NCBI RefSeq assembly: GCF_964188315.1
Contig: NC_135668.1
Coordinates: forward strand, 55,056,001 to 55,120,000
Direction: 5' to 3'
Source: Podarcis muralis
Taxonomy: Eukaryota
DNA: 64,000 nt
The notes under the pieces were generated by a model, which was given only the letters and a program-made list of their open reading frames with translations, had not been told where the DNA came from and ran no database searches. The position numbers were made by a program, and so were the translations under genes. Shown in pieces: positions 24,432 through 54,301 of the stretch. How positions within the stretch are numbered: the first letter of the stretch is position 1; each line of letters opens with the position of its first letter.

Positions 24432-24523
24432 TAAGTTTTACTCGGAGTAATCCCTTTGAAATGAATGAACACCCTCCATACAGGTCCATTAATTTCAACC
24501 GGTCTGCACTTGAGTAAAACTTA
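24432..24523. repeat. Small palindromic element
   Basis: 12-bp perfect inverted repeat TAAGTTTTACTC / GAGTAAAACTTA. Confidence 0.4.
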
Positions 24524-25162: not shown

Positions 25163-25197
<35 letters not shown>

Positions 25198-30118: not shown

Positions 30119-30259
30119 GCATGGGCCTTGGAGAGAGCCAGTCAACCCTTACTACGTCAACACGGGCTACGCCTTGGCACCCGCCACCAGCGCCAACGAC
30201 AGCGAGCAGCACAGCATGTCCAGTGACGCCGACACCATGTCGCTGACAGACAGCAGCGT
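30119..30259 (+). CDS. AXIN1: AXIN1 coding exon 2
   Basis: [46 protein letters not shown], 141 nt. Confidence 0.96.
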
Positions 30260-32535: not shown

Positions 32536-32559
32536 GGGTGCCTGGATCCTAGGCCGCAT

Positions 32560-33000
32560 AGGGCTTTAAAGGTCAAAAAGGTGCCATTTAAAGGGTGCCA
32601 TTGAAGGAGTTCCCTTCGCTCTCCAAGGCTCCTTCCCCCGTGGCCCAAGCCTTTGTCTTCTTGCCTCTCGTGGCTCCACTGTTGTAATTTCTCTGCACAT
32701 TCTGGGAGACCAGCGGGGAGGGCAGCTGCTCACAGCAGGAGGGGAGGCTCCCTGTCTTCTTCCACAGCCTGCCTGCACTCTGCCTCTGAGTCTGCACTGC
32801 TCTCTTCCCACTCGCTAAGCCCTGTTGCCTCTTCTGCTTCCGACACCTGCCAGCAGTCTGCTCCCTCTTCTCCCTCTGACCACCCCTGGTCGCCCAGCCT
32901 ACTTGCCCTGGGGGGTTCCCCGGCTGCTACCTCCCCCTCTACTCTGCCTCCAGCCGGTCCATGACCCCTGGCCGTCTGCACTGTCCCCGCTGTACCCCTT
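32560..33000. mobile_element. Probable LTR-derived fragment (related segment at about 33680-33950)
   Basis: CT-rich dispersed repeat sharing ccctgttgcc...ggggttccccggctg with 33680-33950; family not assignable without a search. Confidence 0.4.
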
Positions 33001-33054
33001 TCCGCCTGGAGCTTGCCTTGCCCTGCGCAAACTCTCACTGTTTCCTCTTGCCAG

Positions 33055-33151
33055 AGACGGGATCCCGCCGTACCGACTCCGGAAGCAGCATCGCCGAGAG
33101 ATGCAGGAAAGTGCCAAAGCAAATGGACGTGTGCCACTACCTCACATTCCC
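33055..33151 (+). CDS. AXIN1: AXIN1 coding exon 3
   Basis: [32 protein letters not shown], 97 nt. Confidence 0.96.
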
Positions 33152-33372
33152 GTGAGTCACGCCAAGCCTCCTCCTGTCTTCCAGAGGGAGAGCATCCGCT
33201 CTGCTTATGGGATGAGGCCCAGCAGGGCCAGCCCCTGGGAAAGGCCTTTCTCCCTCTGCAGCTGCCAGTCAGAGTCGGGAGGGCTGGTGGACGGGGCCTT
33301 GTGCGCTGCATGGCTGGGGTGTGGGGTGTGGCCGGCCCTTTTGCCAACCAGGGCTGCGTGTCGTTCCCACAG

Positions 33373-33510
33373 CGTACTTACCGAATGCCAAAGGATATCC
33401 ACGTTGAACCACAGAAATTTGCTGCCGAGCTGATCAACCGCCTGGAGGAAGTCCTCAGGGACCGGGAGGCGGAGGCCAAGCTTGAGGAGCGCCTGAAGCG
33501 TGTCCGAGCG
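33373..33510 (+). CDS. AXIN1: AXIN1 coding exon 4 (GSK3-binding helix)
   Basis: [27 protein letters not shown]..., 138 nt. Confidence 0.96.
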
Positions 33511-34047
33511 GTCAGTAGGGGCGGCGGGGACAGCTGCGGCTTGCTTGGAGATCCCTGCCCCAGCCTCGCCTGGATGTTTCCCAAGCCGTATCAGATGGTG
33601 TCTGTGCACCTCTGTTCTGCTCTCCTCATTACTCTGCACGTTCTCAGAGACCGGGGGGAGCGGGGCTTGTCACAGGCGGAGAGGGAGACTCCCTGGAGTC
33701 TTCTGCAGTCCCTTGACCCCCCCCCCCTCTGCTTCAGCCTCTGAGTCTGAACTCCTCCCTATCACCTGCTCCCTAAACCCTGTTGCCCCTTCAGCATCCA
33801 GCACCTCCCAATCTTCTCCCTCTGACGTCTCCCTTGTGTCCCACCACCCTGGCTCTGAGCCATCCTCCTCTGGGGGTTCCCTTGGGGGTTCCCCGGCTGG
33901 CACCTCCCACCTCTCCTCTTTGTCCAGCTAGCCCCTGACATCTCCCCCCCCCCCCCGTCCAGCCCCCTCACTTACTCTTCCCGGCCGGTGTTCCCTAAGA
34001 CCTGTCTTCCCCCACCCTCCCTTGACCCGCCTTGTGTTTCCCAGCAG

Positions 34048-34580
34048 GAGGAGGAAGGCGAGGAAGCCGACATCTCCTTGGGGGCCCCCCTGGCGGGCCA
34101 CAAGCTCCCCCTGCCGCAGGCCTTGCCCCACTTGGCCCCCCGCTTTGCCGAGATGCAGCTCCGGGACGCCCACGAGGAGAACCCCGAGAGCATCCTGGAC
34201 GAGCACGTGCAGCGGGTCATGAAGACGCCGGGCTGCCAGTCCCCGGGCCCCGGGCGCCACTCGCCCAAGCCCCGCTCCCCCGAGGGCGGCCTGGCCGGCA
34301 AGCTGCACGGCTTCCTGGGGACGGTGCCCCTTGGGCACGGCAAGCACGGGGCCAAGGCGGCCCTCAAGGCGGACGCGGCCGGCCTCCACCACCACAAGCA
34401 CGTCTACCACCACCACCTGGTCCACCACCACGGGGCGCTCAAGCCCAAGGAGCCGCCCGAGGCGGAGGCCGGCCAGGGCGCGCCAGGACCCTTCGCCTGG
34501 AACGTGGACGCGCACAGCTACGCTGCCAAGTCGCGGGCCTATGGGGAGAGCCTGGGCCCCACGGAGCCCTCGGCTTATGG
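34048..34580 (+). CDS. AXIN1: AXIN1 coding exon 5 (beta-catenin-binding region, His-rich tract)
   Basis: EEEGEE...EENPESILDEHVQRVMKTPG...; tandem CAGCAG acceptor (34045 or 34048). Confidence 0.93.
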
Positions 34581-34961
34581 GTGAGTGGCGGCGGAGGGGG
34601 CCCATTGGGACGGGCGTTGGCCCCTGTGAGCCGCAGGTGGGCAGGGGCAGCCAGGCAGAAATGTTCAAGGGGGGAAGGGGGGGGGGAAGACTCCATGGAG
34701 CTTTCTTCCCGGCGAGGAGGATTTCTGGTGCAAGCCAGTGGCAGGATGGAGGGCTGGGGCTGGAAGAGGTCCAGTGTCTGTGGGGCAGCGAGGGAGGGCG
34801 TTCCAGCACACACAGAGAGCTCATGCTGACAAGCGCAGGGTTGGGGTCCCGATCCCCTGGGTTTCTGCTGCCTGCAGTGCAGCAGATCACCCCCCCCCCC
34901 AATCCCACTCTTGGGAGCAACGCATGACTGAGGCGGTTGCTTGCTTCCTCCTTCCTCACAG

Positions 34962-35138
34962 CGGGAAAGCCGGCCTGCTCTCCAAGAGGAGCGTCAAGAA
35001 AGCCGATTTGGGGAAGAGCGACGGCAGTGGCTATGACGCTCCAGGCTCCTCGGAGGACGTGGAGAAGAACCAGAAGATCATGCAGTGGATCATCGAAGGC
35101 GAGAAGGAGATCAGCAGGCACAAGAAGACAGGCCACGG
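34962..35138 (+). CDS. AXIN1: AXIN1 coding exon 6
   Basis: GKAGLLSK...EKNQKIMQWIIEGEKEISRHKK, 177 nt. Confidence 0.95.
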
Positions 35139-35247
35139 GTGAGAGGGGCAGGGGGAGCTGGCGGCCACGGGTGCGAAAGCTCCATTGCCGGAAAGCAAGG
35201 CTGCCTGGCTACAGGGGGCAGCCCAAGGGGGCTTGCCTCCTTAAGCG

Positions 35248-35431
35248 GCACCTTGTTTTAGAGGGGGAAAACAAGAGGGGGAAAATTCTCCCCCTCTCTG
35301 CGCAGCGCCTCCTGCCGCTTCGCGGAAGGGGTGCTGGGCAGAGAGGGGGAGATTTTTTCCCCCTTGTTCTCCCCCCTCTAAAACAAGGTGCGTCCTATTG
35401 TCCGGTGCATCCTATAGAGCGAAAAATACGG
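35248..35431. mobile_element. Tc1/mariner MITE remnant with internal hairpin
   Basis: About 60-bp inverted arms (35248-35391) and a right TIR gaaaaatacgg|TA like that of 53471-53723. Confidence 0.6.
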
Positions 35432-35797
35432 TATATATTATGTTTTGCTGCCCCCTCTTCCCCCCTCCAGGCCTTCAGAAGAAGATGCCCACCCCCTCAA
35501 CTTTCCAGTTCCTCGGGGAAGGGGCAGGAGGCAGAGGGCCCCTTATCTGTTGCTTTGCATTGATCTGTTGGGGGGGCAGTTCTTGTGGGGGGCACATAGG
35601 AGAGGGAGAGAACTGGCCAGACCTTTGACAGGTTTTTTTTCCAATTCCACAAGGAGGTGGACATTGGGCTCTCTCATTCCAATGGCAGCCTGCGTGATGC
35701 TAAAATTCAAGGGCCCCCCGCCTCTTTCACTCTCTTCTACAGCACTAGTTGTACTATCCCAAAACCTTTTCTGCTTTGTCTCCCCCCCCCCCCCCAG

Positions 35798-36043
35798 CTC
35801 TTCCGGGGCCAAGAAGCAGCTGCCCCATGAGTTGCCCCGGCCAGTCTCCGTGGAGCGCCCCATGGCCGTCCACCCGTGGGTCAGCGCCCAGCTGCGCAAC
35901 GTCGTCCAGCCTTCGCACCCCTTCATCCAGGACCCCACCATGCCCCCCAACCCGGCCCCCAACCCGCTGACGCAGCTGGAGGAAGCCCGGCGGCGCCTGG
36001 AGGAGGAGGAGAAGAGGACGGGGAAGCCGCCGGCCAAGCAGCG
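35798..36043 (+). CDS. AXIN1: AXIN1 coding exon 7
   Basis: [34 protein letters not shown], 246 nt. Confidence 0.96.
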
Positions 36044-37356
36044 GTACGGCCAGGGGGGGCGCTTTTGGGGGGAGGGGGTGTGGCCTTGTCCTGGCCACGG
36101 GGTTGACCAGGAGTGGGTGGGTGGTTGTCTCCCCCCAGACCCCCTGGCCCTGCACCTGCCTTTCAGAGTGAGGAGGGGGCTGCTGGGTTTGGCTCCCTGG
36201 AAGGCAGGCAGAAGGGCCTTGAACAGCTGGAGATGGGGGCCAAAAGACACTCCCCTGTAGCAAAACCTGGGGGGGGGGCGGTGTGCCTTGCAGGGGGTCT
36301 GCTGCCCTCCAGGGGCTGGTCTGGCCCCTCCACTCCCGTGAGGAACTGGAGTCCAGAGCTTGCTGCTGGCTGGTGGGTGTTCTGCACAGCCCTCCCCTTT
36401 GCACTTTTACCTGCTAAGCAGAGCAGCACTTCTCCTCTGGGAGAAAGCGCCTCCTTCTCCTCTGGGACTTTGGGGTGGGGGCTGGTGGGGGTATCTCAGC
36501 TGCAACGGGCAGAGCAGCTCCCCTTGCTTCTTGCCTCTTGGCGCTCATTTCTTCTTCGACTGGAGGAACAGACAGAGATGCTTGGGGGGGGCTCTGTGCT
36601 GCAGTTGGGAGGCTGCGGTGTGAGACTTGCCGGCTCTGTGACGAACCCCCCCCCCAAAGACACAGGCGACTTGCAAGGGAGCTGAGGGGGCTTGTTTGCG
36701 CCAGAGGGGTGGGGTGCGTGTGTGCATTTTGGGCCCAGGTGACTAGCTCTCAACCCCCTTTGTCATGGAGGGGGGGGAAGACGCCTCCGCTGCTGCTGGC
36801 CTTTGGGGTGTGGTGCCCCCTTCATAAGGAGAGCCCCCCTGGATCTGGCCCCTGACCCCTCTAACCCAGCATCCTGTTCTCAGAGGAGGCCCCCAAAGCC
36901 CCAAAGGGAACCTGGATGTGGGGCCTGATCCCAGGAAGACTCTCAGCTGCTGTCGATCAGAAGCATCGCTGCCTCCGAGCCTAGCCAGGGGGGCTGTTGG
37001 CCATTGAGAGCCCTCTCCTCCTCCTCCTCCGCAAAGTTGTCGGATCCCTTTTTAAACCCATCCACCCTCCTGCCCAAACGGCCACCAGGTCGGCTCCTGT
37101 TGTGTTTCTGGGCCCCGAGCAGAGCTGTGCTTTGGGCCCTGGCCTGGGTCTCTTGCCAGCGCCTCTCCCGGCCCCCTCCCTCCTTCCCCACGTGGCAGAG
37201 CTTCCCTCCTGTTCTCTGAGCTCCCTGGGCAGGCCCCCGGGAGAGGGGCAGAGAGAGGAGGCCCCAGTCCCCCGGCCTTTGGGGCCTGCACCCCACGGGG
37301 CTCCCCGGCCGGCTGGCGGCAGGAAGGCTTGTCTAATGTCTGAGATTGTTCCCCAG

Positions 37357-37464
37357 GTATGCCCAAGAGGTGATCCAGAGAGGTCGCTCCTCTGTCAGGC
37401 CGGCTTGCATGCCGCTGCTGAGTGTGGTGCCCGCCGTCTCCGACCTGGATCTCTCCGAGTCTGA
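37357..37464 (+). CDS. AXIN1: AXIN1 108-nt cassette exon (36 aa; alternatively spliced in mammals)
   Basis: YAQEVIQRGRSSVRPACMPLLSVVPAVSDLDLSES; phase 2 at both ends, so skipping keeps the frame. Confidence 0.9.
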   Translation, partial: VCPRGDPERSLLCQAGLHAAAECGARRLRPGSLRV

Positions 37465-37617
37465 GTAGGTGCCCCAGCTCTTCCTGTCTCCTCCCTCCCA
37501 CCCACCCGTCCCGTAGCAGCTCTAGAACCCTCCCCACCCCCCGCCCTGCCAGGGGGCTTCGCTCTGCCGCCTTGCCAGGACCGGCCTCAGCCACGGGGCG
37601 GCTGGACCAGGGAACCC

Positions 37618-38095
37618 TAATAGTAGTAGTAGTAGTAGTAGTAGTAATAATAAATTTTATTTCTACCCCGCCCTCCCTGGCCAGAGCCCAGGGCGGCTAA
37701 CACCAATAAAATCACAGTAAAAACATAATACTGGAAAGAGAGGTGGGGGAAAACCAGTTTAAAATACAGGTTAAAATGCAATTTAAAATGCAGCCTCATT
37801 TTAAAAGTAGCTGATAAATCAAGACCATAAGGGCAGGGAAATATAAGGGTCAGACCGAGTCCAAACCAAAGGCCAGGCGGAACAGCTCCGTCTTGCAGGC
37901 CCTGCGGAAAGATGTCAAGTCCCGCAGGGCCCTAGTCTCTTATGACAGAGTGTTCCACCAAGTCAGGGCCAGTACTGAAAAGGCCCTGGCCCAAGTTGAG
38001 ACCAATCTAACCACCTTGCGGCTTGGGACCTCCAAAGTGTTGTCATTTGTGGACCTTAAGGTCCTCTGCGGGGCATACCAGGAGAGGCGGTCCTG
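37618..38095 (-). mobile_element. L2-type LINE 3' fragment
   Basis: Close homolog of 32085-32535. Confidence 0.75.
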
Positions 38096-38794
38096 TAGGG
38101 CACAGCAGGGAGGCTGCAGGGACCCCTGTGGAGCCTCCTTGCCCCCAATGTGCCCGTTCGCTCGCTGCTGGGAAGCCTCTGATCTGGCAGGCAGCTGCCA
38201 CTAGGCAGGTGGAGAGCCTCCCTCCTCCTTCCCTGCTCAGGGAGTCCTTGTTTTTCTGGCTCCTCTGGCTGCCTGGCCTCAGCCTCCCGCCTGCCCCTGG
38301 TGCCCAGTGCAGCTCAGGTGTTAGCGGCAGGTACTCTTGGGCAGCTTTAAAATGGGATTAGACAAGTAGGAGGAGGAGGAGGGTCCGTGGCTTCTAGGGC
38401 TGATGCCCCCTGGTGCCAGTGGAAGGCCGCCTGCTACTCGTTGGGGGGCAGCAGCAGGAGAGGACTGCTGGCCTCCAGCTGCTTTTGGCCACGGGGGGAG
38501 GGTGCTGGGCCAGGGGGGCCTTGGTGGCAGCAGAGCTCCTCCGACGTTCTTCCCAACTGTTGTTGCCGTGGGGCCTGTGGGGCTGGTTCTGTGGCTTGCC
38601 TTTTGGGGTTGGAGAGCTGAAAAGAATGCCAATATTTTTTGCATCTGGCCACCAACATGCCCCTTTGGTTTCAGATGGTACATGGACAGAACATGAGTCC
38701 AAAAAACCCAGGACACACATTTTCACAGATCCTCCAGAAGGAATGTCTGGAAGTGCAGACTCGATTCTGACTAAGTTAAGCCTCCTGGTGTATA

Positions 38795-39025
38795 CAGTCA
38801 TACCTTGGATCCCAAACACCCTGGAACTCAGATGTTTTGGCTCCCAGATGCCGCAAACCTAGAATTGAGTGTTCCGGTTTGCGAACTTTCTTTTGGAACC
38901 CAAACGTCCGATGGGGCTTCAGGAGCTTCCTGCAGCCAATCAGAAGCCACGATTTGGTTTTCGAACATTTTGGATGTTGAACGGACTTCCAGAACGGATT
39001 CTGTTTGACTTCCAAGGTACGACTG
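38795..39025. mobile_element. Tc1/mariner (Tigger-like) MITE
   Basis: TA|cagtcataccttgg ... ccaaggtacgactg|TA. Confidence 0.85.
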
Positions 39026-39269
39026 TATTATGATCTAGGCCTAGGAGGCTTCTTTTGGTCAGAAAATTGCCATATTTCAAAAAGTAAAAACTAGGATGCC
39101 CCAAAAGTTGTTGAACTTTCAAAAACGCCAAAAAAAGTGTTGCGTTATGTCTGGGAAAATCCGGAAGTATGGCAGCCCTAAATACATTACTTCTGGTAAG
39201 TGAGTCATCATAGCCACTAGAGGGCCATGAATATTTGTGTTCTGGGCTTTTTAATCTCATCTACCCTAA

Positions 39270-39622
39270 GGGACGCGGGTGGTGCTGTGGGTTAAACCAC
39301 AGAGCCTAGGACTTGCCGATCAGAAGGTCGGTGGTTCGAATCCCCACGACGGGGTGAGCTCCCGTTGCTCGGTCCCTGCTCCTGCCAACCTAGCAGTTCA
39401 AAAGCACATCAAAGTGCAAGTATATAAAGAGGTACCGCTCTGGTGGGAAGGTAAACGGCGTTTCCATGTGCTGCTCTGGTTCACCAGAAGTGGCTTAATC
39501 ATGCTGGCCACATGACCTGGAAGCTGTACACTGGCTCCCTCGGCCAGTAAAGCGAGATGAGCGCCACAACCCCAGAGTCGTCTGCGACTGGACCTAATCG
39601 TCAGGTGTCCCTTTACCTTTAC
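39270..39622 (+). mobile_element. Sauria SINE
   Basis: GGGACGCGGGTGG head and CCTTTACCTTTAC tail. Confidence 0.88.
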
Positions 39623-40463
39623 CCCTGCACTATCTGAAACCAAAGGGGCTCTTGTTTGCCAGATGTGAATTTTATTCCAGCTCTCCTGCCGCACTAGAAG
39701 GTTTTGTGTTTGGTCTGAGCACCCGGCCAGCGTGCAGAGAGCCAGGGTGGGCTGGCGAAGGGAAGGGACAGGCTGGTGAGTGGAGGGGTGCAGCCGGGTA
39801 CCAATGGCCCCTCATTGCTTGTGCCGGAGCAGTGGGCTGGGACGGCTTCTTGCTTTGAACCCCTCCTGCCCCTTTTCCTACAGAAGGGAGCTGAATTGTG
39901 CAGGAGCTGAGCTGTGTGCTGGTCCAGGGCTCTTGGCGAGGCTCCTTGGCAAGCGAGGGCTTTTCCCTTAGCAGGGACATCTTGGGGCCTAGTTGTTCCC
40001 AGAGAAAGAGGTGGCATCCCTTTGTCTGAACAAATCCTTCGGTCTTTGAGGCAACCAACACCCCCCCCCCTCTTTTGGAAAGGTCTTTTGCTCAGCTCCC
40101 TGCCTAGTAAGCGTTGGGGATATCTGTCCCCCTCTTCCCCAGGTAGCAATGCTGGGATGGCTGCAGCACCCACCCACCCCGGCCTGGGCACCCCCCTCTC
40201 TGAGCTGTGGCTTTTTCCTCTCTCTGTGTTCCTGCCCTTTGGCTATGGGAAGTTCCAGTCACCTGCCGCCCTTCTCCTTTGGGCTTCTGGGACTGGAGAG
40301 GAAGCTGTTCTCCCCCAGAGCTTCCTGGGTCCCGGCAGGGGGTGCCTGTGCCGTTCTTGCCCCCGGTTTGCAAGGGAGCTGGTTCCCTCCCTCCAAGGAA
40401 GTTCAGCAGGTGGTGTATCGGCTTCCCGCCGTGTAAAGGGCTTGTGCTGTGTTTGCCTTGCAG

Positions 40464-40631
40464 GGCGAAGGTGCAGAAGAGGCCGGGGGCCAGCTCCGCT
40501 CAGCCCTGCGAGAACATTGTGGTAGCCTACTACTTCTGCGGAGAACCCATCCCCTACCGCACGCTGGTCAAAGGCCGTGTCGTCACCCTGGGCCACTTCA
40601 AGGAGCTGCTCACCAAGAAAGGGAACTACAG
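40464..40631 (+). CDS. AXIN1: AXIN1 coding exon 9 (DIX domain)
   Basis: [37 protein letters not shown], 168 nt. Confidence 0.97.
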
Positions 40632-41635
40632 GTGAGCAGGGAGGGATGCCTCGGGTCCCTGGGCAAGAAGCCTTGCCTCTGGTGCTTCCCCTCTTTGGCT
40701 CGTGGCCTCCAGCCTCTGCCCCTGGGGATGAGAAGTCCCACAAATGTGTGGGCCCCAACTCTGTCGGTTGGCACAGAAGCAGGAAAGAGGCAGGGGGAGG
40801 GTGCCCAGGAGACGGATCGCTGTGCAAATCTCACCTCCGCAGAACCAAGCCAAGAGGTATTTGGAGAAGGAAACTCAAGTCAAAACCCGATTTTGTTTGC
40901 ATCAGAGCTGAGGAAGCCTGTGCCAAGGGAAACCCCAAACACACTAAATGGCACGTCATGTTCAGAGTTGCACGCTTTCTTCTAAACTGACAATTTCCTC
41001 TCTTTTTTTTGCAGAACCTCTCCTTTAGTTTATTGGCAGAGAGCGGAATGGGCCCATTTTAGAGGTGGAGGTGGCAGGAGTCGGGGGCACCTGAGCTGTG
41101 AGGGGAGCCCATTGTCAGCGCAGCCATGCACCACATGACCCTTCTTGTATTCTGATGAGGACTAGAAACTTGCTTTAAAGCAGGGGGAGCTGTGGGGACC
41201 CTCCTGGTGTCGCCAGATTTCAGCTCCCAGCAGCATGGCTAGCGGTCAGGAATGATGGGAGCTGCAGTCCTGGAGCGACACAGATTTCTCTACCCCAGTT
41301 TAAAAAGTGCGCTGGCCTGCCGGTCATTCTGCATCAGGATCCGCAGAGGGTTTGGCTCATCAGCCTGCTCCGCGGAAGCCCTGCACAAGTTTGTGCATTT
41401 CCTCTGTCCTCGTCACTTGTGCTAAAACGCTGTCGGTGGTTTCCAGTGAATCTATGTAGAGTTGGGGCTCGGAGGACAGGGCCCAGCTGCGGGGAAGGGG
41501 GGGGTTTGGCCCGGGGTCCTCCTTGCCGCCCCCTTTGCCTTCTGCCTTGGGTTTGTGCTGGAAAGGCCCCCGAGCGCCCCGCTGAGCCTCCGAGGGGTTG
41601 CAGGCTCTGGATCTCCCACACTCTCTGTCTTGCAG

Positions 41636-44149: not shown

Positions 44150-44227
44150 CTACAGCTCGTCCCTTGGTTCTGGGGAGCCTGGTGGGCTCGTTCGATTCTC
44201 CTGGGGTTCTTCGGGGGTCTCAGCAGC
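44150..44227 (-). CDS. PDIA2: PDIA2 exon 11 (ends in ER-retrieval motif RDEL)
   Basis: ttccag|AAETPEEPQENRTSPPGSPEPRDEL*. Confidence 0.85.
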   Translation of the reverse strand, partial: AAETPEEPQENRTSPPGSPEPRDEL

Positions 44228-44314
44228 CTGGAAAGCCAGAGCCCAGCATCACCGTGGGAACGGGGACAAACTCAATGTTCGGAGTGGGCACGAGGGGTTG
44301 CCGCTGAAACTCAC

Positions 44315-44404
44315 CTTGGTGTCGTCCTGGGGAGGGACCTCACCCCCGTTCTCCAAGAACGCCGAGAAGGATTCTAGGTCTCTGGCGCTCTGGTACTCGA
44401 TCAT
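44315..44404 (-). CDS. PDIA2: PDIA2 exon 10
   Basis: MIEYQSARDLESFSAFLENGGEVPPQDDTK|gtgagt. Confidence 0.9.
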
Positions 44405-44568
44405 CTGGGGTGGAAAACGGGGGGTGTTGGCCTGGCTTTGCCCCACAAGCAGCTGCCGCCTCCCTTCTACCTCCTGGGGGAGCCTCCTTGCTCTACTGTC
44501 CCGGAGGACCTGGGCACATCCTGCGGCCACAGTTTCCCCCACCCCATGCCATGGGGCACCTGCATTAC

Positions 44569-44750
44569 CTTCTTGTCCTGCCCTGCAGGGAAGTAGTAGA
44601 GCGTTGGGTAGGCTCGGATGGGGAGCCCTGCTACTTCGTTGGCCGTGGCGTCCATCTCTGCGATGAGGACGTCCTCACGGTCTTTATATTTCTCGCCCAG
44701 CTCTGCCCAGGCGGGCGCCATCGCCTTGGAGTGCGGGCACCAGGGGGCAT
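44569..44750 (-). CDS. PDIA2: PDIA2 exon 9 (a' domain, site WCPHS)
   Basis: YAPWCPHSKAMAPAWAELGEKY...IAEMDATANEV...YPTLYYFPAG, 182 nt. Confidence 0.93.
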
Positions 44751-45135
44751 CTGTGGAAGCGGAAGAGAAGGGATGGAGTTAGGAAGACGCAAGTCTGTTT
44801 TGTCGTCAGGCCGGTTCACCAACTGCAGCCCTCTCTGGAGAAAGCTGACCTGGTTTCAGTTGTGCAGGCTGCGTCCCTCTTAACACCTCCCTGTGGGGCT
44901 GCCTTTAAAAATGACCCCACAACTGGCACAGAGGATGTAATGGGTGTTTGCACTGATCTGGTACCAACTGCACTGGCTGCCGGTTGCTTTCTGCTCCCAT
45001 TTTCAGGCCCTGTTTTAACTGTTAAAGCCCTACATAGTTTGAGACCCCTTGCCCCACTGTAAGCCCACCGGGACTTTAAGTTCAGCTTCAAAACCCCCGC
45101 TCTGTTGTGGCCTGTTATGGCCTATTGGATTGATG

Positions 45136-45189
<54 letters not shown>

Positions 45190-45527
45190 TTATTTATACC
45201 CCGCCCATCTGGCTGAGTTTCCCCAGCCACTCTGAGCAGCTCCCAATCAAGTGTTAAAAATGGGAAACAGGACCTTCTCAGTGGTGGGCCCAGCCTTTCA
45301 GGATTTCCTCCTCAGGGAATTATGGCCCCATTGAGCATTCTGGCCCCATTTCAAAGTATCCTGAAGACTTTATAAATTCCAGACTGTTTGGCTGATACAC
45401 ATTTGTTATCACACTGGTAAATTATTTCTATGCGGTTTTTGTAATAAATGTTTTCTGAACCGCTTGGGAAGGGCTGGGCTCTGAAAGTCTGTAAAGCAAG
45501 CAAGTTCTCTCAGCAGCAATTTTCCAT

Positions 45528-45604
45528 GAGATAGCTCAGTCAGTAGAGCGCGAGACTTTGAATCTCAGGGTTTCAGTCCCACACCGGGTAAAAAGATTCC
45601 TGCA
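45528..45604 (+). mobile_element. tRNA-derived SINE head fragment
   Basis: A-box tagctcagtcagtagagc, deleted T-arm, continues into aaaagattcctgc SINE body. Confidence 0.6.
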
Positions 45605-45812
45605 GTTCTGTATATGTATATATCATTGAGCTCTGTATATGTACCTGAAAAGTCTGGGTCAAGCCTGTTTCTGCCAACTGGGGATGAGAGGGGAAAACCC
45701 CCAAGGAGGGCTGCCCTCCCAGTAAGTTTCCAGAGGATGCCAGGAGGGAACGTGGACGAGCCCCAGAGGCAGCTTTGAGGTTCCTCCTCCCCAGTCCCAA
45801 AGTGCCACTTAC

Positions 45813-45933
45813 AGAACTTCACAAAGACGCTCTTGCTCTCGTCAAACGCCACTTGATCAAAGTTTCTCCCAACCAGGGTCTTGACGGGCGCCTTATCCCA
45901 GTCCTCTGCAATCTCCTCGCTCATCAGGTATGG
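45813..45933 (-). CDS. PDIA2: PDIA2 exon 8
   Basis: [40 protein letters not shown], 121 nt. Confidence 0.94.
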
Positions 45934-46717
45934 CTGGAAAGAGGAAGCAACGCTTAGTGCTGTGGGTCGGTGGAGTGGTGATAGACTTGTTTTTTATTTT
46001 ATTTTATTTATGATTTTCAGTTTTATACATTTCAATAATTTTACAATCATTTTAACATTTCAAAACTTGACTTCCTCCCCCCTCTTTTTGTAGTTCCTTA
46101 AATTTATTTTTAATATTCTCTGCACATCCATGTTAATTTGCTCATTTATCCATCTACTTTAAATTCATACTCTTATAAAACTGCAGCTTATTACAATAAC
46201 CCTGCCAATGTTCTTATCTGCTTACAGTTTGTTTGTAAATATTCAATAAACCATTTCCATTCTTTTACAAAAAGTTTGCTATCTTGATTTCTTGATTTCA
46301 AAGAGACTCCAACCAGAGAATGGTGGCTTATAAAATGAATGGATTATGCTGAAATGGCAAAACTGACGGTAAAACTCAGAGGACAGACACAGCGATGAAC
46401 TGTTTATGGAAAATGGGAGGCCTTTTTTTTGGACTACCTGCCAAATATTTTAGCAATAGGAAATTGCGTGCAGGATTTGAAATATGAACAACAACAAGCA
46501 ACATGCCGGCTAATAATATACTGACTATTTTTATAACACTATACTGTTTCAAAATTCATAAACAGAAGACATACAATATGTGCATGGGGTCACAAACTAA
46601 TAAGAATCAAATAAATGTTCCATGAACAGGAATGGTAGGAGTGGATTTGAAATATGTGTGGGAGAAAAAAAGAATGGTCAGATGGAATTGGGGGGGTTTA
46701 GTAATAAGTACAAATTA

Positions 46718-47071
46718 TGGTGCTGGAGGAGACTTGAGAGTCCCACGGACTGCAAGAAGCTCAAACCTCTCCATTCTGAAGGAAATCAGCCCTGAATGCT
46801 CACTGGAAGGACAGATCCTGAAGCTGAGGCTCCAATACTTTGGCCACCTCATGAGAAGAGAAGACTCCCTGGAAAAGACCCTGATGTTGGGAAAGATGGA
46901 GGGCACAAGGAGAAGGGGATGACAGAGGACGAGATGGTGGGACAGTGTTCTCGAAGCTACCAGCATGAGTTTGACCAAAGTGCGGGAGGCAGTGGAAGAC
47001 AGAAGTGCCTGGCGTGCTCTGGTCCAGGGGGTCACGAAGAGGCGGACACGACTAAACGACTAAACAACAAC
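46718..47071 (+). mobile_element. Bov-B (RTE) LINE 3' fragment
   Basis: SLEGQILKLRLQYFGHLMRREDSLEKTLMLGK and tail gacacgactaaacgactaaacaacaac. Confidence 0.9.
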
Positions 47072-47260
47072 TACAATAATAAATGCAGCAATTAAGGATA
47101 AAAAACATCAGTGCAGGGTGGGTGGGAAAGACAAAAGGAAACATATAAGTGAATGATAAATTGTATGTGAAGTACATTTTTTAAAAAAAGGAATATAAAA
47201 AAGAGTCCTTGTCCCTTTCTCCCCCCCCCCCCCAGCCTCACCATGCAGCTGGCTGCCCAC

Positions 47261-47458
47261 CTGGACTTTGCCCTCCATCACCTCCTGGCAGAAGGCATGG
47301 ATGGCAGGAGCCGTGAGGGATCCGTCTGCGCCCAAGAGGTATTTCCTGTTGCTCTCAATGTTGATGAAGCGGATGGCGGGAGCCTCGGGGCTCTTGAGGC
47401 CAAAGAAGTGCAGGATCTGGGCTCCTTCCCCGTTGACGTCGGCCAGCACGAAAAGCAC
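47261..47458 (-). CDS. PDIA2: PDIA2 exon 7
   Basis: VLFVLADVNGEGAQILHFFGLK...EGKVQ, 198 nt. Confidence 0.93.
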
Positions 47459-47650
47459 CTGCCCAGGGGGTGCACAGAGGGGCAGAGATGAGTCTAGTCC
47501 AACCCCCGGCAGGGCAGGAATATGCTCCCTGGGACTCGCCTCCCAGAAGCAGAAAACACAGCACCCACACAAACCCCACCCCCTCCCTGCATGGGACCCC
47601 CCACCCAAAAGCCCCAGGGCAAATGTGCCGGCTGGCCACGGGGGGCTCAC

Positions 47651-47776
47651 CTGTCCCCGGAAGGCAGGGGCAGCATCTCGGAAGCTGCTGAGGAGCTCCA
47701 GCTGAGAGTCCTGCGTCTTGTTGATGAAGAGCAGCAGGTGGTTTGGGATCTTTGCCCCAAATATCCTGGAGGAGTT
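47651..47776 (-). CDS. PDIA2: PDIA2 exon 6
   Basis: NSSRIFGAKIPNHLLLFINKT...FRGQ, 126 nt. Confidence 0.93.
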
Positions 47777-48480
47777 CTAAGGGAAAGACACAGGCGGGTG
47801 TAGTGATCAGGTGGGATTGCTAGGAGGAATTATACAAAATATGGAGCAAGCCATCTGTGTCAGCAATGAAAGCATTGCGTTGACTGGGTTTAAGCCATTT
47901 TTAAATGATTTTTGATCAATCCACGCCTCTGCATCCCTGTCCTATTTCTCTTGCTTGACAAGTCACTTACACAGCCCAGTTGCCAGTTGCTTCGCCAGGC
48001 CATGAAAGATAGTAGGCAGTTCTTTGATGTGCCCTTCCTTGATTTTGTTCATCTCAGGGCCAAGAAATAGTTTTTCACATGAAGGTGATAAAGATCCCTA
48101 TCGTCCTTGCCATCCTTCCTATCATGTTTATTGCTGTTTATGACCTCCGGGGTTGCTGAATGCATCCCTCCTTTTTTGTTCTGTTTTATTTACCCCAGAA
48201 GTATGCATGCTTAATTAGTTTTTGTAGTTTAACTTTGTCCCACATGGGTTTTTTGAAATGCTCAGAGGAAATCTGATTGGTTCTTAAGTACACTGTGTAA
48301 AAAGTTCTTTTGTGAATAAAACGACCTGGGCCGGAGGGTGGACAGGCATTATTATTATACGCACACCTCCCAGAGTCTTGCTGGTCAAGCCTCTGTGTGT
48401 CTTCTATTAAGCAGAGTCTAATCCTTCCTTTGCTTTGGGAATGCCAGAGTGGGGACCCCCCAGGGGTGGAGGGGTGTGAG

Positions 48481-48957
48481 TGTTAGGTTTCTGTTTTGAC
48501 ACACTGCCCAGTGGTGTTCACAGAAAAGGGAAGGATGTTAGATTTCTGTTTTGCCGCTGTGCAGCGCTTGGAGTCACAAGACTCTGTTTACATTCCAGAC
48601 ATTCCAGACTGTTGGAAGTCTCACGGGAGACGGATGTTGATATTACTGGTTTCCTGTTCCTTTGTTCCAGTTGCCTCTCTGCTTTCAGAGAGAGGGGATG
48701 TATATTCTTTTCTGTCTGTCTGTCTTAGCAATGTAGCTCATATTTCTCGTCCTTCTGCTGCTTGGATATGTTAAAACTCTGCTAAGTTATAGAACTTGCT
48801 AGGGCAACTTGGGAAGGATTTTAATAAACAATATATCCTCTCCTGCCTCCCTGAACATTCCCACAATTTCTGTGTTCTCTCTCTGTAAATATTGAATAAA
48901 AGACTTGGTAAGAACTCTTCTTTTTTTAGCTGCTTCCTGGCTGCCACTGTGGGAGGG
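48481..48957 (+). mobile_element. Possible solo LTR
   Basis: Starts TGT, LTR-like composition, internal AATAAA near 48896; boundaries uncertain. Confidence 0.3.
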
Positions 48958-49370
48958 ATCATAGAATCATAGAGTTGGAAGAGACCACAAGGGCCATCGA
49001 GTCCAACCCCCTGCCAAGCAGGAAACACCATCACAGCACTCCTGACATATGGTTGTCAAGCCTCTGCTTAAAGACCTCCAAAGAAGGAGACTCCACCACA
49101 CTCCTTGGCAGCAAATTCCACTGTCGAACAGCTCTTACTGTCAGGAAGTTCTTCCTAATGTTTAGGTGGAATCTTCTTTCTTGTAGTTTGGATCCATTGC
49201 TCCGTGTCCGCTTCTCTGGAGCAGCAGAAAACAACCTTTCTCCCTCCTCTATATGACATCCTTTTATATATTTGAACATGGCTATCATATCACCCCTCAA
49301 CCTCCTCTTCTCCAGGCTAAACATGCCCAGCTCCCTTAGCCGTTCCTCATAAGGCATCGTTTCCAGGCCT
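48958..49370 (-). mobile_element. CR1 LINE 3' fragment
   Basis: PYEERLRELGMFSLEKRRLRGDMI...VESPSLEVFKQRLD plus ATTCTATG-type tail. Confidence 0.92.
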
Positions 49371-49657
49371 TTTGGCTGGCCCTTGTGCTCTATGTGGATC
49401 AGATTCCCTGGAGCCTGACATGCAGTGGCTCCTCTCCCTCTGGAGGTGCTGAGCTGTGGCAGGGCTTTGCTTGCTAGAAGGGGAGGTAACGAGTTGGAAG
49501 GGCCCCCCCCCCACGGTCATCTGGGCCAACCCCCTGCAATGCTGGAAAATCCCTAAAAGGGACAAGCAACCCTAGCAAGAAAGAGCCAAGAGGAGCTGGG
49601 CTCTGGCTGGCAGCCAGGAGGAAGAAGGGTCTGAGGAACTGCAGAGCTTCCTCTCAC

Positions 49658-49774
49658 CTGGCTCGTATACTCCATCACCAGCTCCAGGCTCTGCACCAGG
49701 ATGAATTGTGCCAGCTCCGCCCCATCCAGTCCTAGCTCTTCATCCACCAGGAAGTCTTCCCGGGACTCATCATG
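49658..49774 (-). CDS. PDIA2: PDIA2 exon 5
   Basis: HDESREDFLVDEELGLDGAELAQFILVQSLELVMEYTSQ, 117 nt. Confidence 0.92.
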
Positions 49775-50505
49775 CTGCAAGCGAATGAATGAATGGATTA
49801 ATGAATGAATGAATCTTTCTTTGCATCAGCCATCAGCCATAAAAATAAAGCAAACAAAATTGTGGTATACAGAGGATAAAGGTAAAAAGTCAATTATGTA
49901 AAAAACATTTTGGGGGTTTGGGTCAATGGTCAAATAAGGGATCTTATTCTAATTGCCCCGGTGAAAAACCTTGCAACCTTTGCTGTCACCTGCTCATCTT
50001 GATCTGCCAAGAGAAAGGACACTGTAGCAGTGGTTGGGCAACCCAGAATGGACAATAATAGAAGGATGATAGCCCAGCTACTCACACTGGGTTTTAGAAA
50101 AGTGAACAACTTAATTAGGCAGTGCTTAAAATGATATCGAGCAACAGAATAATCTGGCCACAATAAGGAAATTTTGGGCATGGTATGACTATTTCCCACC
50201 CAGTCGTCTTGACTCTCTGGCACCCTGTTTGCATAACTTAATAATTCAAAAATATAGGCACACTTATACTCTTGCAAGATTGAATATACTGCCTTCAGCT
50301 GTACTTGAGAGATGTTTCCAAAAAATTCCACTCAAGAAACGGTTATGTGACAGAGTCTGTCTGGGCAGATCCAGGGAGCACCATCTAAATCTCAGCAGCT
50401 GCACCAGTCACAGAAAGATACGCCTCCCCTCTAAATGCCCCCCCCCCCCGTCTTTTAACCAACCCTGCTAAGCTCCTGGAAGTGCCCGCCTGGCCCAGCT
50501 CTCAC

Positions 50506-50646
50506 CTTCCGGAAGAGAGAGACGGTGCCAGGGTGGGTCACGTTGAACTTCTCAAAGAGCTCCGAGCAGTTGGTGAGTGCGAAGGCAACGTCCGGAGCAT
50601 CGCTGGCCACATCGTAGAAGAGGCGCACGTCTTCATCCTGCAGGTC
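50506..50646 (-). CDS. PDIA2: PDIA2 exon 4
   Basis: DLQDEDVRLFYDVASD...TVSLFRK, 141 nt. Confidence 0.92.
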
Positions 50647-50999
50647 CTGCAAGGAATGCGTGGCGGCTGAGCCGGGCACAGGATGCCAGGAGCAGCACGC
50701 ACAGGATATCCGAGGCCTGCGCTCCATTTGTGGAGAGGAAAGAGAGTCTCGTTCTGGGAGACCTGCTTCCCCCGGCAGGGCCTTGGGTGCGGGGAAGCTA
50801 CCCTAAGACAGCAACTCCCTGGGGGCTCCCCAGCTGGGGCCCAAATGTCCCCTGGAATGTGCCAGAGGCTGACCCTCACATTTCCTCCCTTTCCCAGCTG
50901 CAGGGAGCAGGCAGCTGGCTGCACCACCAGGAAACAGCAGCTCAGGGGTAGCAGCTTGGCTTGGCTGCAGGAGTGCAGAGGCGCAAGTGGGGCACTCAC

Positions 51000-51133
51000 A
51001 GGGAAGAATCCGACCACCGCCACCATGTTGGCATCCAGGAAAGCAGCCGCCTGGCTGGCATTCTCCAGCAGCACCGCACTGGGCCCAGCTTTCCGTTTCA
51101 GCCACTTCACGATTCCCTCTGCGTCTCGCTGGC
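51000..51133 (-). CDS. PDIA2: PDIA2 exon 3
   Basis: QRDAEGIVKWLKRKAGPSAVLL...VVGFFP, 134 nt. Confidence 0.93.
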
Positions 51134-52085
51134 CTGGCAAACGGGCGGCAAAAGTGTGAGTTGTGGGGCAGCACCACCTGCTTGACCAGGCACTGTGTTA
51201 TGAAGGGAGAGCGGCGAATGGCACCACTCCTCTCGCAGGGGCTCATGGCGGCTGAGGTTCAGATGAGAATAAGCCCCTGATGTGATGCAAATGCAATCCC
51301 GGGAAATCTAGGCGAGGAGCTGCAAGCGAAGAGCTTTCTTGCTCCCTCTGAGGTGAAGCCCTCATGTCAGGGAATGGTCTGGATCTGAAGATTGGGGAAT
51401 GCAGTCTCAGGCAGATCAGCTCCTCTCAAGAGGAAGGGGGATATCCCCCCCCCCCACCAAACTCCAGCATTTCCAGAAGCAGAGAGAGAGAGGCAGAAAC
51501 AAACGTAGAAGCTGAACAGGTTAGGGAGGAGTTACCCAGCTATGAGATAATGACAAGCGATCCGGAAGGGAGCGGTCAGCTGGAAGATACATCAATTGAA
51601 AGTGGGGGAGAGACCCCCCTCCCCTTGGACTCAGAGCTCTGAACGTATCGGAGAACAAAGGAGACTGAGAGGGGGAGGGACTTCCCATTGGCGCACTCCT
51701 TGCTGCAGAAGTTGGAAGTCAGATTCAGAATAGGCAACTGATCTCCTTGCAGAGGGTTGTCTGTGTGTGCAACACGACGTTGTAATAAAGGACTAGAAAT
51801 CTATCAACTGCTCATTAATTCTTATCTGTGAGCTACTGGAGGAAGAGGGGAACTCCCTCGCTTGACACCTCATGCCCAAAGAGCCACAGGATAAGAACCA
51901 AGGGAGACCCCGGCTGCTGCTGGATCAGGCCCATCTAGTCCAGCATCTTGTTCTCAAAGGGGCCAGCCGGATGCTCCCAAAGGGACCCAAGGGCCGCACC
52001 AATGGGTATTCAGAGCCACCCTGCCTCCGACAGGGGAGGTCCAGGGCGGCTGAGAACGCCCCGCAAAACCACTGCCTCTTCTGAC

Positions 52086-52292
52086 CTGTGAAGTCCGCCG
52101 GGTGAGTGCGGTTGCCGTCTCTGAACAGCTTGAGGACGGGGAAGCCGCTGACTCCAAACTCTGCGCTCAGCTCCTTCTCCTGCTCCCCGTCCACCTTGGC
52201 CAGGCGCAGCGCAGAGCCCTCCTCCTTCAGCAGGGCGGCGGCCTTGGCGTACTCCGGGGCCAGGGCCTGGCAGTGACTGCTCCAGGGGGCAT
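52086..52292 (-). CDS. PDIA2: PDIA2 exon 2 (a domain, site WSSHC)
   Basis: [22 protein letters not shown]...LAKVD...[19 protein letters not shown], 207 nt; the GNRTHP motif is typical of PDIA2. Confidence 0.94.
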
Positions 52293-53004
52293 CTGGGAGG
52301 GAAAAGGAGGAGGGGTGAAGCGTCAACCCCACAGGCAACCAAAAGCAGTGCGGAGGTGTGTAAGGACATCTGAGGAGCCTGCTGGATCGGGTCCAGCATC
52401 CTGTTCTCACAGTGGCCAGCCAGAAGCCCCACAGGGAAGCCCACAAGCAAGACCTGGGTGCGAGAGCTACTCTTCCCTCCTGCGCTTTCCAGCAACTGGC
52501 CTTGGGAAGAATTTGCTGTCTCTGAGTGTGGGGCCAGGGCAACCCCACTGTGGTGGTGATGGGGGGGGTGTACATGCACACCAGTGGGTCTCAGGGGCCA
52601 CAGGCACAGCAGGAGAGTGTGGTTCTGTAGGCTGCCCTTCCTCCTGCCCCGTGGGTCTGGCAGGCCATGTTTGCTCTCCCAATAGGCCGCTGATAGCTGC
52701 TTTTGCTTAATCTCATCTCCTTCATCTCTTTTTCGCCTTCCAGCGCATAGAACAGGTTTGCTCCAACAGAAGCAGCTCTGTGGTGCCACAGGAGGACACG
52801 GCTGGGGTGGGGTGGGGGGCTGGAAGGTGAGGCGGGAGCTACAAGAAGGGTAATAATAATATAATGATAATTTTTTTTATATACCCTGCCCTCCCCAGCC
52901 AGGGCCAGGCTCAGGATGGCTAACACCAAATATAAATTACAACAAAACGTAATGGGGGGGAAAGTTAATTAAAATACTGCTTAAAATGCAGTCTCATCTT
53001 AGTA

Positions 53005-53363
53005 AGGTAAAGGTAAAGGTACCCCTGCCTGTACGGGCCAGTCTTGCCAGACTCTAGGGTTGTGCGCTCATCTCACTCTATAGGCCGGGAGCCAGCGCTG
53101 TCCGCAGACACTTCCGGGTCACGTGGCCAGCATGACATCGCTGCTCTGGCGAGCCAGCGCAGCACACGGAACGCCGTTTACCTTCCTGCTGGTAAGCGGT
53201 CCCTATTTATCTACTTGCACCCGGGGTGCTTTCGAACTGCTAGGTTGGCAGGCGCTGGGACCGAACGACAGGAGCGCACCCCGCCGCGGGGATTCGAACT
53301 GCCGACCATGCGATCGGCAAGTCCTAGGCACTGAGGTTTTACCCACAGCGCCACCCGCGTCCC
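53005..53363 (-). mobile_element. Sauria SINE
   Basis: Full length, CpG-rich, 12-bp TSD CTCATCTTAGTA (52993-53004 and 53364-53375). Confidence 0.93.
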
Positions 53364-53470
53364 CTCATCTTAGTAGCAGCCCATAAATCAAGACCATAAA
53401 GGGAGGAAACATCAGATATTCAACCATGCTGGTCCTACATGGGCCAGCAAAAAAGCCAAGGGGGAAATTA

Positions 53471-53723
53471 CTGTATTTTTTGCTCTATAAGACTCACTTT
53501 CTCCCTCCTAAAAAGTAAGGGGAAATGTGTGTGTGCATCTTATGGAGCGAATGCAGGCTGCGCAGCTATCCCAGAAGCCAGAACAGCAAGAGGGATTGCT
53601 GCTTTCGCTGCGCAGAGATCCCTCTTGCTGTTCTGGCTTCTGAGATTCATTTTTTTTGTTTTCCTCCTCCAAAAACTAGGTGCGTCGTGTGGTCTGGTGC
53701 GTCTTATAAAGTGAAAAATACGG
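53471..53723. mobile_element. Tc1/mariner MITE with internal 25-bp perfect hairpin
   Basis: TA|ctgtattttttgctctataagac ... gtcttataaagtgaaaaatacgg|TA; arms 53572-53596 and 53618-53642. Confidence 0.88.
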
Positions 53724-54111
53724 TATGTACCAAATCCCATATAAGGGGTCAGAGTGAGTCTAAGCCCGAAGGCCAGGTGGAACAGCTCCATCTTGCAGGC
53801 CCTGCGGAAAGATGTCAAATCCCGCAGGGCCCTGGTCTCTTGGGACAGAACGTTCCATCAAGTTGGGGCCAGTGCTGAAAAGGCCCTGGCCCTAGTTGAG
53901 AGGGTACCCTTGCCGGAGGGGATGTCCCTTAACAGGGTCCGCTGTGCCCCCTCCCCTAAGCAACCAAGCAGCCACCCTCTGAAGGGGGCGCTCCAGTTTG
54001 CCCCACCTGCCCCCTCCCAGCGCCTGCTGCTTTTTGCCTGGGGGTGCAGGCCAGGGGAGTCCCTGGTGGTGCCCCGTTCAAGCTCTCCCCCCTGCAGCAG
54101 CTGCTACTCAC

Positions 54112-54301
54112 AGAACTCCACCAGGAGCAGCTTGTGCTTCCGCAGGGCTTGGGCAAAGTTGCTCTGGTTGAGCACCAAGACCCCCTGGTCCTCCTCTTCC
54201 TCCTCTTCCTCTGCCTGGTTCCTGCTCTCCTGGGCCCCCAAACGATGCACTAAGGCCACTGCCAGCCCCAGTGCCAGCAGGAGTCTCGGGAGGCAGCCCA
54301 T
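54112..54301 (-). CDS. PDIA2: PDIA2 exon 1 (signal peptide)
   Basis: MGCLPRLLLALGLAVALVHRLGAQ...EEEEEEEDQGVLVLNQSNFAQALRKHKLLLVEF; spliced CDS 1584 nt = 527 aa; tail-to-tail with AXIN1 as in human. Confidence 0.92.

Follow-up and report, generated by a model that had tools for sequence, protein, structure and literature searches.

In the CXXC motif of a protein disulfide isomerase (PDI), the first cysteine makes the attack on client disulfides, and resolution of the resulting adduct falls to the second. Human PDIA2 (PDIp, pancreatic PDI) carries CGHC in its a domain and CTHC in its a′ domain and is redox active (PMC3500226). Yeast Eug1p, a full-length PDI homologue, has only the N-terminal cysteine at its sites (CLHS and CIHS; PMC2195995), and PDILT, a vertebrate abb′a′ paralogue with SKQS and SKKC, has lost catalytic cysteines, conserves an SXXC motif, and is considered a chaperone (PMC4894388). 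AGR2 (CPHS) and ERp44 (CRFS) are natural CXXS proteins of thioredoxin fold in the endoplasmic reticulum (ER), where they form mixed disulfides with clients in holdase or thiol-retention roles (PMC12384036). CXXS sites form no internal disulfide, do not carry oxidizing equivalents, and are suited to shuffling (PMC2195995); CXXS-PDI catalyzes isomerization but neither oxidation nor reduction and holds its clients longer (PMC12384036), and in PDI engineered to CGHS the isomerase activity is left, oxidase and reductase activities are abolished, and client trapping is prolonged (PMC12384036, PMC2195995). Here we describe the PDIA2 gene in 64,000 nucleotides of the lizard Podarcis muralis (assembly GCF_964188315.1, contig NC_135668.1, positions 55,056,001 to 55,120,000; hereafter the window). 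Its product has no complete CXXC motif, a condition that, in whole or in part, extends to 26 of 27 sampled squamate species and is accompanied by purifying selection.

The gene occupies positions 44150-54301 of the minus strand in 11 exons, with a coding sequence of 1584 nucleotides, a single terminal stop, and a product of 527 amino acids (aa). Rebuilt from open reading frames, all 10 introns are GT..AG with compatible phases, in agreement with the intact frame claimed by the original prediction, whose coordinates and reading of the two altered motifs, as well as its FPV and YPT cis-Pro loops and RDEL tail, were exact. The parts of the gene are as follows.

54112..54301, minus strand: exon 1, with the start codon at 54301, a hydrophobic signal-like N-terminus (residues 1-24), and the acidic run EEEEEEED; it opens domain a and ends in phase 1, on the T of the Tyr codon in VEFY
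52086..52292, minus strand: exon 2, core of thioredoxin domain a, with the altered site, the FPV loop, and the sequon NRT
52270..52284, minus strand: a-site motif WSSHC, codons TGG AGC AGT CAC TGC
52135-52143, minus strand: cis-Pro loop FPV of domain a, in exon 2
52105-52113, minus strand: N-glycosylation sequon NRT, in exon 2
51000..51133, minus strand: exon 3, which closes domain a (Arg135 at 51126-51128) and opens domain b
50506..50646, minus strand: exon 4, domain b, with the non-conserved Cys204 (50566-50568)
49658..49774, minus strand: exon 5, boundary of domains b and b′
47651..47776, minus strand: exon 6, domain b′ (Thioredoxin_6), with the sequon NKT at 47714-47722
47261..47458, minus strand: exon 7, domain b′ and x-linker, with Cys362 (47288-47290)
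45813..45933, minus strand: exon 8, start of domain a′; it ends in phase 1, on the T of the Tyr codon in VKFY
44569..44750, minus strand: exon 9, core of thioredoxin domain a′, with the altered site and the YPT loop
44728..44742, minus strand: a′-site motif WCPHS, codons TGG TGC CCG CAC TCC
44602-44610, minus strand: cis-Pro loop YPT of domain a′, in exon 9
44315..44404, minus strand: exon 10, end of domain a′, with the conserved Arg480 (44381-44383)
44150..44227, minus strand: exon 11, acidic tail, with the sequon NRT at 44189-44197, RDEL at 44153-44164, and the stop TAG at 44150-44152

At the a site, Ser68 stands in place of the nucleophilic cysteine and Ser69 in place of glycine, and the C-terminal Cys71 is retained. 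At the a′ site, the nucleophilic Cys416 is retained, threonine is replaced by Pro417, and the resolving cysteine is replaced by Ser419. WSSHC and WCPHS match the WCGHC of human PDI domains a and a′ column for column (phmmer against PDB chains) and also align with the CGHC and CTHC of human PDIA2, motifs that the original prediction had cited correctly (PMC3500226). A classical CXXC enzyme has at least one W-C-x-x-C site, and the Podarcis protein has none; its a′ domain has instead the structural marks of the non-canonical CXXS class (Eug1p, ERp44, AGR2/3, TMX5), namely WCPHS, YPT, and Arg480. Residues 1-24 are hydrophobic and form a low-confidence helix at the N-terminus of the structure model, no dedicated signal-peptide predictor having been applied.

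The a′ codons also hold in a second individual. In an independent P. muralis genomic run (X15, ~11x), a contig covering 44100-45129 carries six single-nucleotide polymorphisms, none of them within 44728-44742, so that the motif reads WCPHS there and not TGC at its serine. WSSHC is likewise present in P. raffonei and P. lilfordi, each from its own assembly, and in an older P. muralis model. One of the X15 polymorphisms, C>T at 44712, corresponds to the Ala-to-Thr allele of the older RefSeq P. muralis protein. The older and newer RefSeq proteins (P0242 and P0066) differ at 9 of 527 residues, with neither motif touched, and protein polymorphism of PDIA2 within P. muralis is considerable.

Each of the described systems resembles this protein in part. 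With human and mammalian PDIA2 it shares a place beside AXIN1, a group in the gene tree, the a-b-b′-a′ architecture, three sequons at equivalent places, and a KDEL-type tail, but it has SSHC and CPHS where the human enzyme has two complete motifs. Eug1p, like the squamate a′ domain, keeps only the N-terminal cysteine, and the PDIA2 proteins of Rhineura, Varanus, and Elgaria, with CXXC in a and CXXS in a′, are partial analogues of it; Eug1p, however, has CXXS in both domains, whereas Podarcis has CXXS in a′ only and SXXC in a, and the two states arose independently in fungi and squamates. The SSHC of Podarcis falls in the same class as the SXXC of PDILT, but PDILT is a different gene at a different locus and lacks a nucleophile-bearing CXXS site, whereas squamate PDIA2 keeps Cys416. 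PDILT is also distant in sequence: its structure 5xf7 is 32% identical to Podarcis PDIA2, against 46-47% for PDI, and exons 2 and 9 match its chain at no more than 34-39 bits. The tetrapeptide of AGR2 is identical to the squamate a′ motif, as the original prediction had noted, and ERp44 also ends in RDEL (PMC12384036). AGR2 consists of a single thioredoxin domain and ERp44 of a-b-b′, neither being a family-level homologue of the a′ domain of a four-domain PDI, and the identity of the CPHS motifs is convergent. The CGHS forms of PDI are laboratory mutants, whereas the squamate change arose in nature, has become fixed in a large clade, and is upheld by selection.

The original prediction treated the change as private to this lizard, and in this it was wrong. 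We surveyed the motifs in aligned named orthologues from 27 squamate species and in 145 non-squamate PDIA2 proteins, having opened the orthologue lists through a representative search with the b′ exon (seed P0002), which returned mostly fragments. The a′ site reads CP[HY]S in 26 of the 27 squamate species, the exception being the cordylid Hemicordylus capensis, and every sampled lacertid has the a-site Cys-to-Ser change, which has arisen independently in snakes, iguanians, and skinks as well. The second serine alone (SGHC to SSHC) is confined to Podarcis. The motifs are distributed as follows.

Lacertids (three Podarcis species, Zootoca, Lacerta): a′ WCPHS; a WSSHC in Podarcis, WSGHC in Zootoca and Lacerta
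Amphisbaenian Rhineura: a′ WCPHS; a WCGHC
Varanus and Elgaria: a′ WCPHS; a WCRPC in Varanus, GCGRC in Elgaria
Ten snakes: a′ WCPHS, with WCPYS in Liasis; a WSGHC and variants
Six iguanians: a′ WCPHS; a WSELC or WSDLC
Skinks Tiliqua and Lerista: a′ WCPHS; a LSGHC in Tiliqua, LAGHW in Lerista (low-quality model)
Cordylid Hemicordylus capensis: a′ WCTHC; a WCGHC

Outside squamates the a site is CxxC in 145 of 145 proteins and the a′ site in 143. The two a′ exceptions are the beaked whale Mesoplodon densirostris (WSTHC, P0202) and the caecilian Microcaecilia unicolor (WSTHS, P0206), both from models unverified for assembly or annotation error; Rhinatrema bivittatum (P0212), a relative of Microcaecilia, retains WCTHC. 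These losses are independent of the squamate ones. An a′ site of WCPHC occurs naturally in passerines (P0127, P0147, P0160) and in the zebra Equus quagga (P0222), indicating that proline at this position is compatible with a CXXC site, and from its sequence WCPHC is a plausible intermediate toward the squamate CPHS.

To follow the changes at the codon level, 12 annotated proteins were threaded onto their loci to obtain exact coding sequences, each with 11 exons and an exact translation. At position 68, Podarcis, Zootoca, Sceloporus, and Pogona encode serine by AGC, and Candoia, Liasis, and Tiliqua encode it by TCT; cysteine (TGY) is retained in Rhineura, Varanus, Elgaria, Hemicordylus, and the turtle. 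Fitch parsimony on the accepted squamate phylogeny places four Cys-to-Ser events at this position, in lacertids, iguanians, snakes, and skinks. At position 419, lacertoids, Elgaria, snakes, and iguanians use TCC, TCG, or TCA for serine, and Tiliqua and Varanus use AGC. Since the TCN and AGC families are two steps apart, the presence of both means that the a′ serine either arose at least twice or survived a codon switch. A single step separates the AGC of Tiliqua from the TGC found in the related cordylid, which points to an independent Cys-to-Ser change in skinks; that of Varanus points to a codon-family switch or a further event.

The gene tree was computed without the motif columns. It does not resolve the base of Squamata and weakly sets Hemicordylus outside all CPHS sequences (77/89), and a grouping of the cordylid with the skinks is not rejected (p-AU 0.27, approximately unbiased test). 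A single origin of CPHS with lineage sorting is therefore possible, and the codon families favor parallel changes at 419 over a single origin without being decisive. Whichever the number of origins, Ser419 has been favored or maintained. In every case the loss of the a site came later than the change in a′, and none was seen on a CXXC a′ background. Clade-wide, ordered (a′ first, then a four times), and recurrent, this Cys-to-Ser change is a clear instance of parallel molecular evolution.

The altered gene is under purifying selection. Pairwise ratios of nonsynonymous to synonymous substitution rates (dN/dS; Nei-Gojobori, with Fisher's test) were obtained along paths that include some lying wholly within the altered state.

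Podarcis-Zootoca (path wholly SxxC/CPHS): dN/dS 0.20, Fisher p 5e-10
Candoia-Liasis: 0.30, p 3e-8
Sceloporus-Pogona: 0.22, p 7e-32
Varanus-Elgaria: 0.19, p 2e-32
Podarcis-Rhineura: 0.22, p 4e-27
Hemicordylus-Mauremys (canonical state): 0.21, p 1e-34

Overall the ratio ranges from 0.19 to 0.31, and within domain a it is 0.14-0.28 in altered lineages; most comparisons also put the b′ domain under purifying selection. Among the 12 coding sequences there is no nonsynonymous change at the codons for Cys71 or Cys416. Over the wider sample, no squamate lacks Cys416 and only the low-quality Lerista model lacks Cys71; Arg480, the cis-Pro loops, the xDEL-type tail, and two of the three N-glycosylation sequons are kept in nearly all squamate models. 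Cys362 is found in all sampled squamates as well as in human, caecilians, coelacanth, and bowfin, and is replaced in turtles, gharial, and chicken. We saw no new conserved cysteine in squamates, whose mature proteins contain 3-5 cysteines.

Several lines of evidence identify the gene as PDIA2, the name given in the original prediction. The 527-aa product is 100% identical to the RefSeq entry 'protein disulfide-isomerase A2 [Podarcis muralis]' (P0066) and, over domains a through a′, shares 56% identity with human PDIA2. It scores 466 bits against TIGR01130 ER_PDI_fam (cutoff 344), and Pfam places two Thioredoxin domains on either side of a Thioredoxin_6 region. An AlphaFold2 model built from a 32-sequence alignment (mean predicted local distance difference test score, pLDDT, 81.7) has human PDI abb′xa′ as its top structural neighbors (4EKZ, template modeling score 0.67/0.74). 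All of the best 120 matches of the homologue search bear the name PDIA2, and the squamate sequences form a clade with 100/100 support nested in sauropsid PDIA2. The neighboring genes agree.

21016..40632, plus strand: AXIN1, with a TNKS-BD/RGS exon at 21016-21945 and a DIX exon near 40.5 kb; tail to tail with PDIA2
55380-63807 of the window: Ank/Pre-SET/SET gene, upstream of PDIA2
L001:1-286, L002:1-757, L006:1-631, and L007:1936-8279, in the loci of relatives: the Ank/Pre-SET/SET gene, with products of 504-572 aa

Sceloporus (L006) and Hemicordylus (L007) also have AXIN1 downstream of PDIA2. The Ank/Pre-SET/SET gene, which is a squamate-wide gene, lies upstream of PDIA2 in Rhineura, Tiliqua, Sceloporus, and Hemicordylus as well. 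In Hemicordylus, whose PDIA2 (isoform X1) was placed at the orthologous locus, the order is RGS11-like, Ank/SET, PDIA2, AXIN1. In human, too, AXIN1 neighbors PDIA2 in the same convergent arrangement. The map position of human PDIA2, 16p13.3, is published (PMC3500226). Synteny, gene tree, and domain architecture together establish the gene as the positional and phylogenetic orthologue of PDIA2, and therefore as neither PDILT nor P4HB.

Other features of the window lie within or near these genes. Introns 5, 7, and 8 of PDIA2 carry high-copy repeats (48900-49500, 46700-47100, and 45130-45198) with word depths of 10^4 to 10^6 in all runs, and an open stretch of 161 aa at 49516-49034 on the minus strand, which includes MFSLEKRRLRGDMIAMFKYIKG, looks like the C-terminal part of a reverse transcriptase of LINE/CR1 type (LINE, long interspersed nuclear element). 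Upstream of the AXIN1 RGS exon, an open stretch of 241 aa at 17662-18384 on the plus strand, which includes MVANRLRLNPDKTEVLFWGD, resembles a fragment of a retrotransposon reverse transcriptase. A Pfam search of the open stretch at 5287-6393, in a putative MRPL28 region, gave no match.

The explanation that we prefer, at a probability of about 0.65, is that the gene is the functional PDIA2 orthologue of a lacertid lizard, with both of its sites rebuilt, and that its protein most probably acts through a single cysteine to shuffle disulfides or hold clients, as established thioredoxin-fold chemistry would predict. The original prediction's shift from an oxidoreductase to a thiol-trapping or chaperone protein is, in this light, a reasonable conjecture from the known behavior of CXXS and SXXC sites. 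Neither site would be able to form an intramolecular CXXC disulfide, and the protein should be unable to carry oxidizing equivalents or to finish a reductase cycle. Domain a, having no attacking thiolate, would be catalytically silent. Domain a′ would keep one exposed reactive thiolate, that of Cys416, which would attack client disulfides to give mixed disulfides resolvable only by a client thiol, glutathione, or another PDI; such Cys-dependent mixed disulfides are what the CXXS literature leads us to expect. Together with the chaperone site of domain b′, this would make a disulfide shuffler or client holder of the ER, comparable to Eug1p or to PDI engineered to CGHS and, as a holder, to AGR2 and ERp44.

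A number of observations weigh against this explanation. In altered lineages the dN/dS of domain a′ is 0.125-0.17, about twice the canonical 0.07, and in relative-rate tests the snakes, iguanians, and skink evolve faster than the cordylid (the lacertids, Rhineura, and Elgaria do not). The faster rates may reflect generally faster lineages, from which an acceleration of PDIA2 is not separable, and some relaxation of constraint, at most mild, is possible. Cys416 might be conserved for a structural rather than a catalytic reason, and a third cysteine, such as Cys362, could in principle serve as an alternative resolving thiol. Exon-exon joints were not found in three runs labeled 'RNA?' over 44100-50099, which yielded unspliced contigs at 2-3x only. 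These contigs span introns 9 and 10 at 44100-44600 and leave exons 6-8 uncovered; they may derive from DNA carry-over, pre-mRNA, or read-through of the AXIN1 3′ untranslated region antisense to the 3′ end of PDIA2, with carry-over and read-through equally possible as sources. Finally, the taxon sampling is without geckos, tuatara, teiids, xantusiids, and gerrhosaurids, no PDIA2 of which was among the best 120 matches of either of two homologue searches, even though annotated genomes exist for several of these groups. This is not evidence of loss, and could reflect loss, strong divergence, or an effect of which matches were listed.

A bolder extension of the same explanation concerns why the a site was lost. 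That its loss is repeated, and confined to CXXS a′ backgrounds, suggests that, after a′ had stopped cycling, redox activity at the a site was of no further use or did harm; that it interfered by resolving a′ adducts is speculation. We entertain, tentatively and at less than even odds, an epistatic ratchet in which CPHS would have arisen in a′ at least twice (TGC to AGC in skinks, TGC to TCC in the clade of lacertoids, snakes, anguimorphs, and iguanians), the a site would then have become harmful by resolving the client adducts of a′, and selection would have removed the a nucleophile at least four times, leaving a dedicated thiol-retention or holdase PDI of the ER with squamate-specific clients. 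Those clients may lie in the pancreas or oviduct, given a listing of PDIA2 among candidates for eggshell formation in Zootoca. This listing, citing Recknagel et al. 2021, stands in a preprint (10.1101/2023.10.22.563505), where PDIA2 is also listed with episodic diversifying selection in oviparous snakes.

Alternatively, the protein could be a purely redox-independent chaperone like PDILT, binding clients through the b′ pocket, with Cys71 and Cys416 serving only structure. This would fit the SxxC of the a site, a motif of the class to which the conserved SKKC of PDILT belongs (PMC4894388), the purifying selection on b′ in most comparisons, and an erosion of the context of the a site, where iguanians and skinks have Leu or Ala in place of Glu62 and skinks have Leu in place of Trp67. 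We consider it unlikely. Cys416 is invariant in the sampled squamates along with its cis-Pro loop and Arg480, whereas its a-site equivalent has disappeared from these proteins four times, a contrast that favors some function particular to the a′ thiol; Ser419 is kept across two codon families; and PDILT itself, to judge by the title of van Lith et al. 2005, takes part in disulfide-dependent interactions.

It is more doubtful still that the protein remains an oxidoreductase with near-normal cycling, its resolving thiol replaced by Cys362 of the b′/x region, by Cys71 acting across domains, by a partner PDI, or by glutathione. ERp44 is thought to release clients by way of a second cysteine, C63 (PMC12384036), and Cys362 is present in every sampled squamate while being replaced in turtles, gharial, and chicken. 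However, the presence of Cys362 in human, caecilians, coelacanth, and bowfin makes it ancestral and not a compensating gain, squamates have acquired no new conserved cysteine among their 3-5, and a CXXS site alone cannot carry oxidizing equivalents (PMC2195995).

Decay of an unneeded PDIA2 drifting toward a pseudogene would account for damage to both catalytic motifs, and could draw on the faster protein evolution of snakes, iguanians, and skink and on the absence of spliced transcripts from the three runs. It is nevertheless very improbable. The 11-exon frame is intact in 12 of 12 species, and more than 20 squamates have full-length models; the ER-retrieval tail, sequons, and cis-Pro loops are retained; and the altered state is old, being common to lacertoids, anguimorphs, iguanians, snakes, and skinks. 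Above all, dN/dS values of 0.19-0.31 (p down to 1e-34) equal those of canonical lineages and lie far below 1, the value that the original prediction, in combination with a lack of expression, named as the mark of decay, and we reject decay for this reason. An error of sequencing or assembly at the two codons, or a paralogue (PDILT or P4HB) taken for PDIA2, has a negligible probability and is rejected, given the same codons in an independent individual and in assemblies of three Podarcis species, Zootoca, and Lacerta, an orthologous gene order in five squamates, nearest named proteins that are all PDIA2, and the low identity to PDILT.

The protein sequences discussed here are already public and annotated as PDIA2, and a full-text search of one literature library found no description of PDIA2 motif changes in squamates or reptiles. 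What appears to be new is the recognition that squamate PDIA2 has lost its CXXC motifs, that the loss is clade-wide, ordered, and recurrent, and that the altered sites are kept under selection. Automatic annotation gives the name 'protein disulfide-isomerase A2' to proteins that cannot be classical disulfide oxidoreductases; without a complete CXXC they should not be filed as such, and squamate PDIA2 belongs, with a function proposed by analogy, among the non-canonical PDIs.

PDIA2 is among the least understood of the classical PDIs, and a 2012 review of the human family reported no knockout study of it (PMC3500226). Squamates offer a natural experiment. The order, with roughly eleven thousand species, seems to get by on a PDIA2 that lacks CXXC, even as the gene stays under purifying selection, and the clade preserves natural intermediates, from CGHC/CTHC in the cordylid through CGHC/CPHS in the amphisbaenian and CRPC/CPHS in Varanus to SxxC/CPHS in lacertids and snakes. 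Such a series makes testable both the interdependence in vivo of the two active sites of a PDI and the transition from foldase to holdase.

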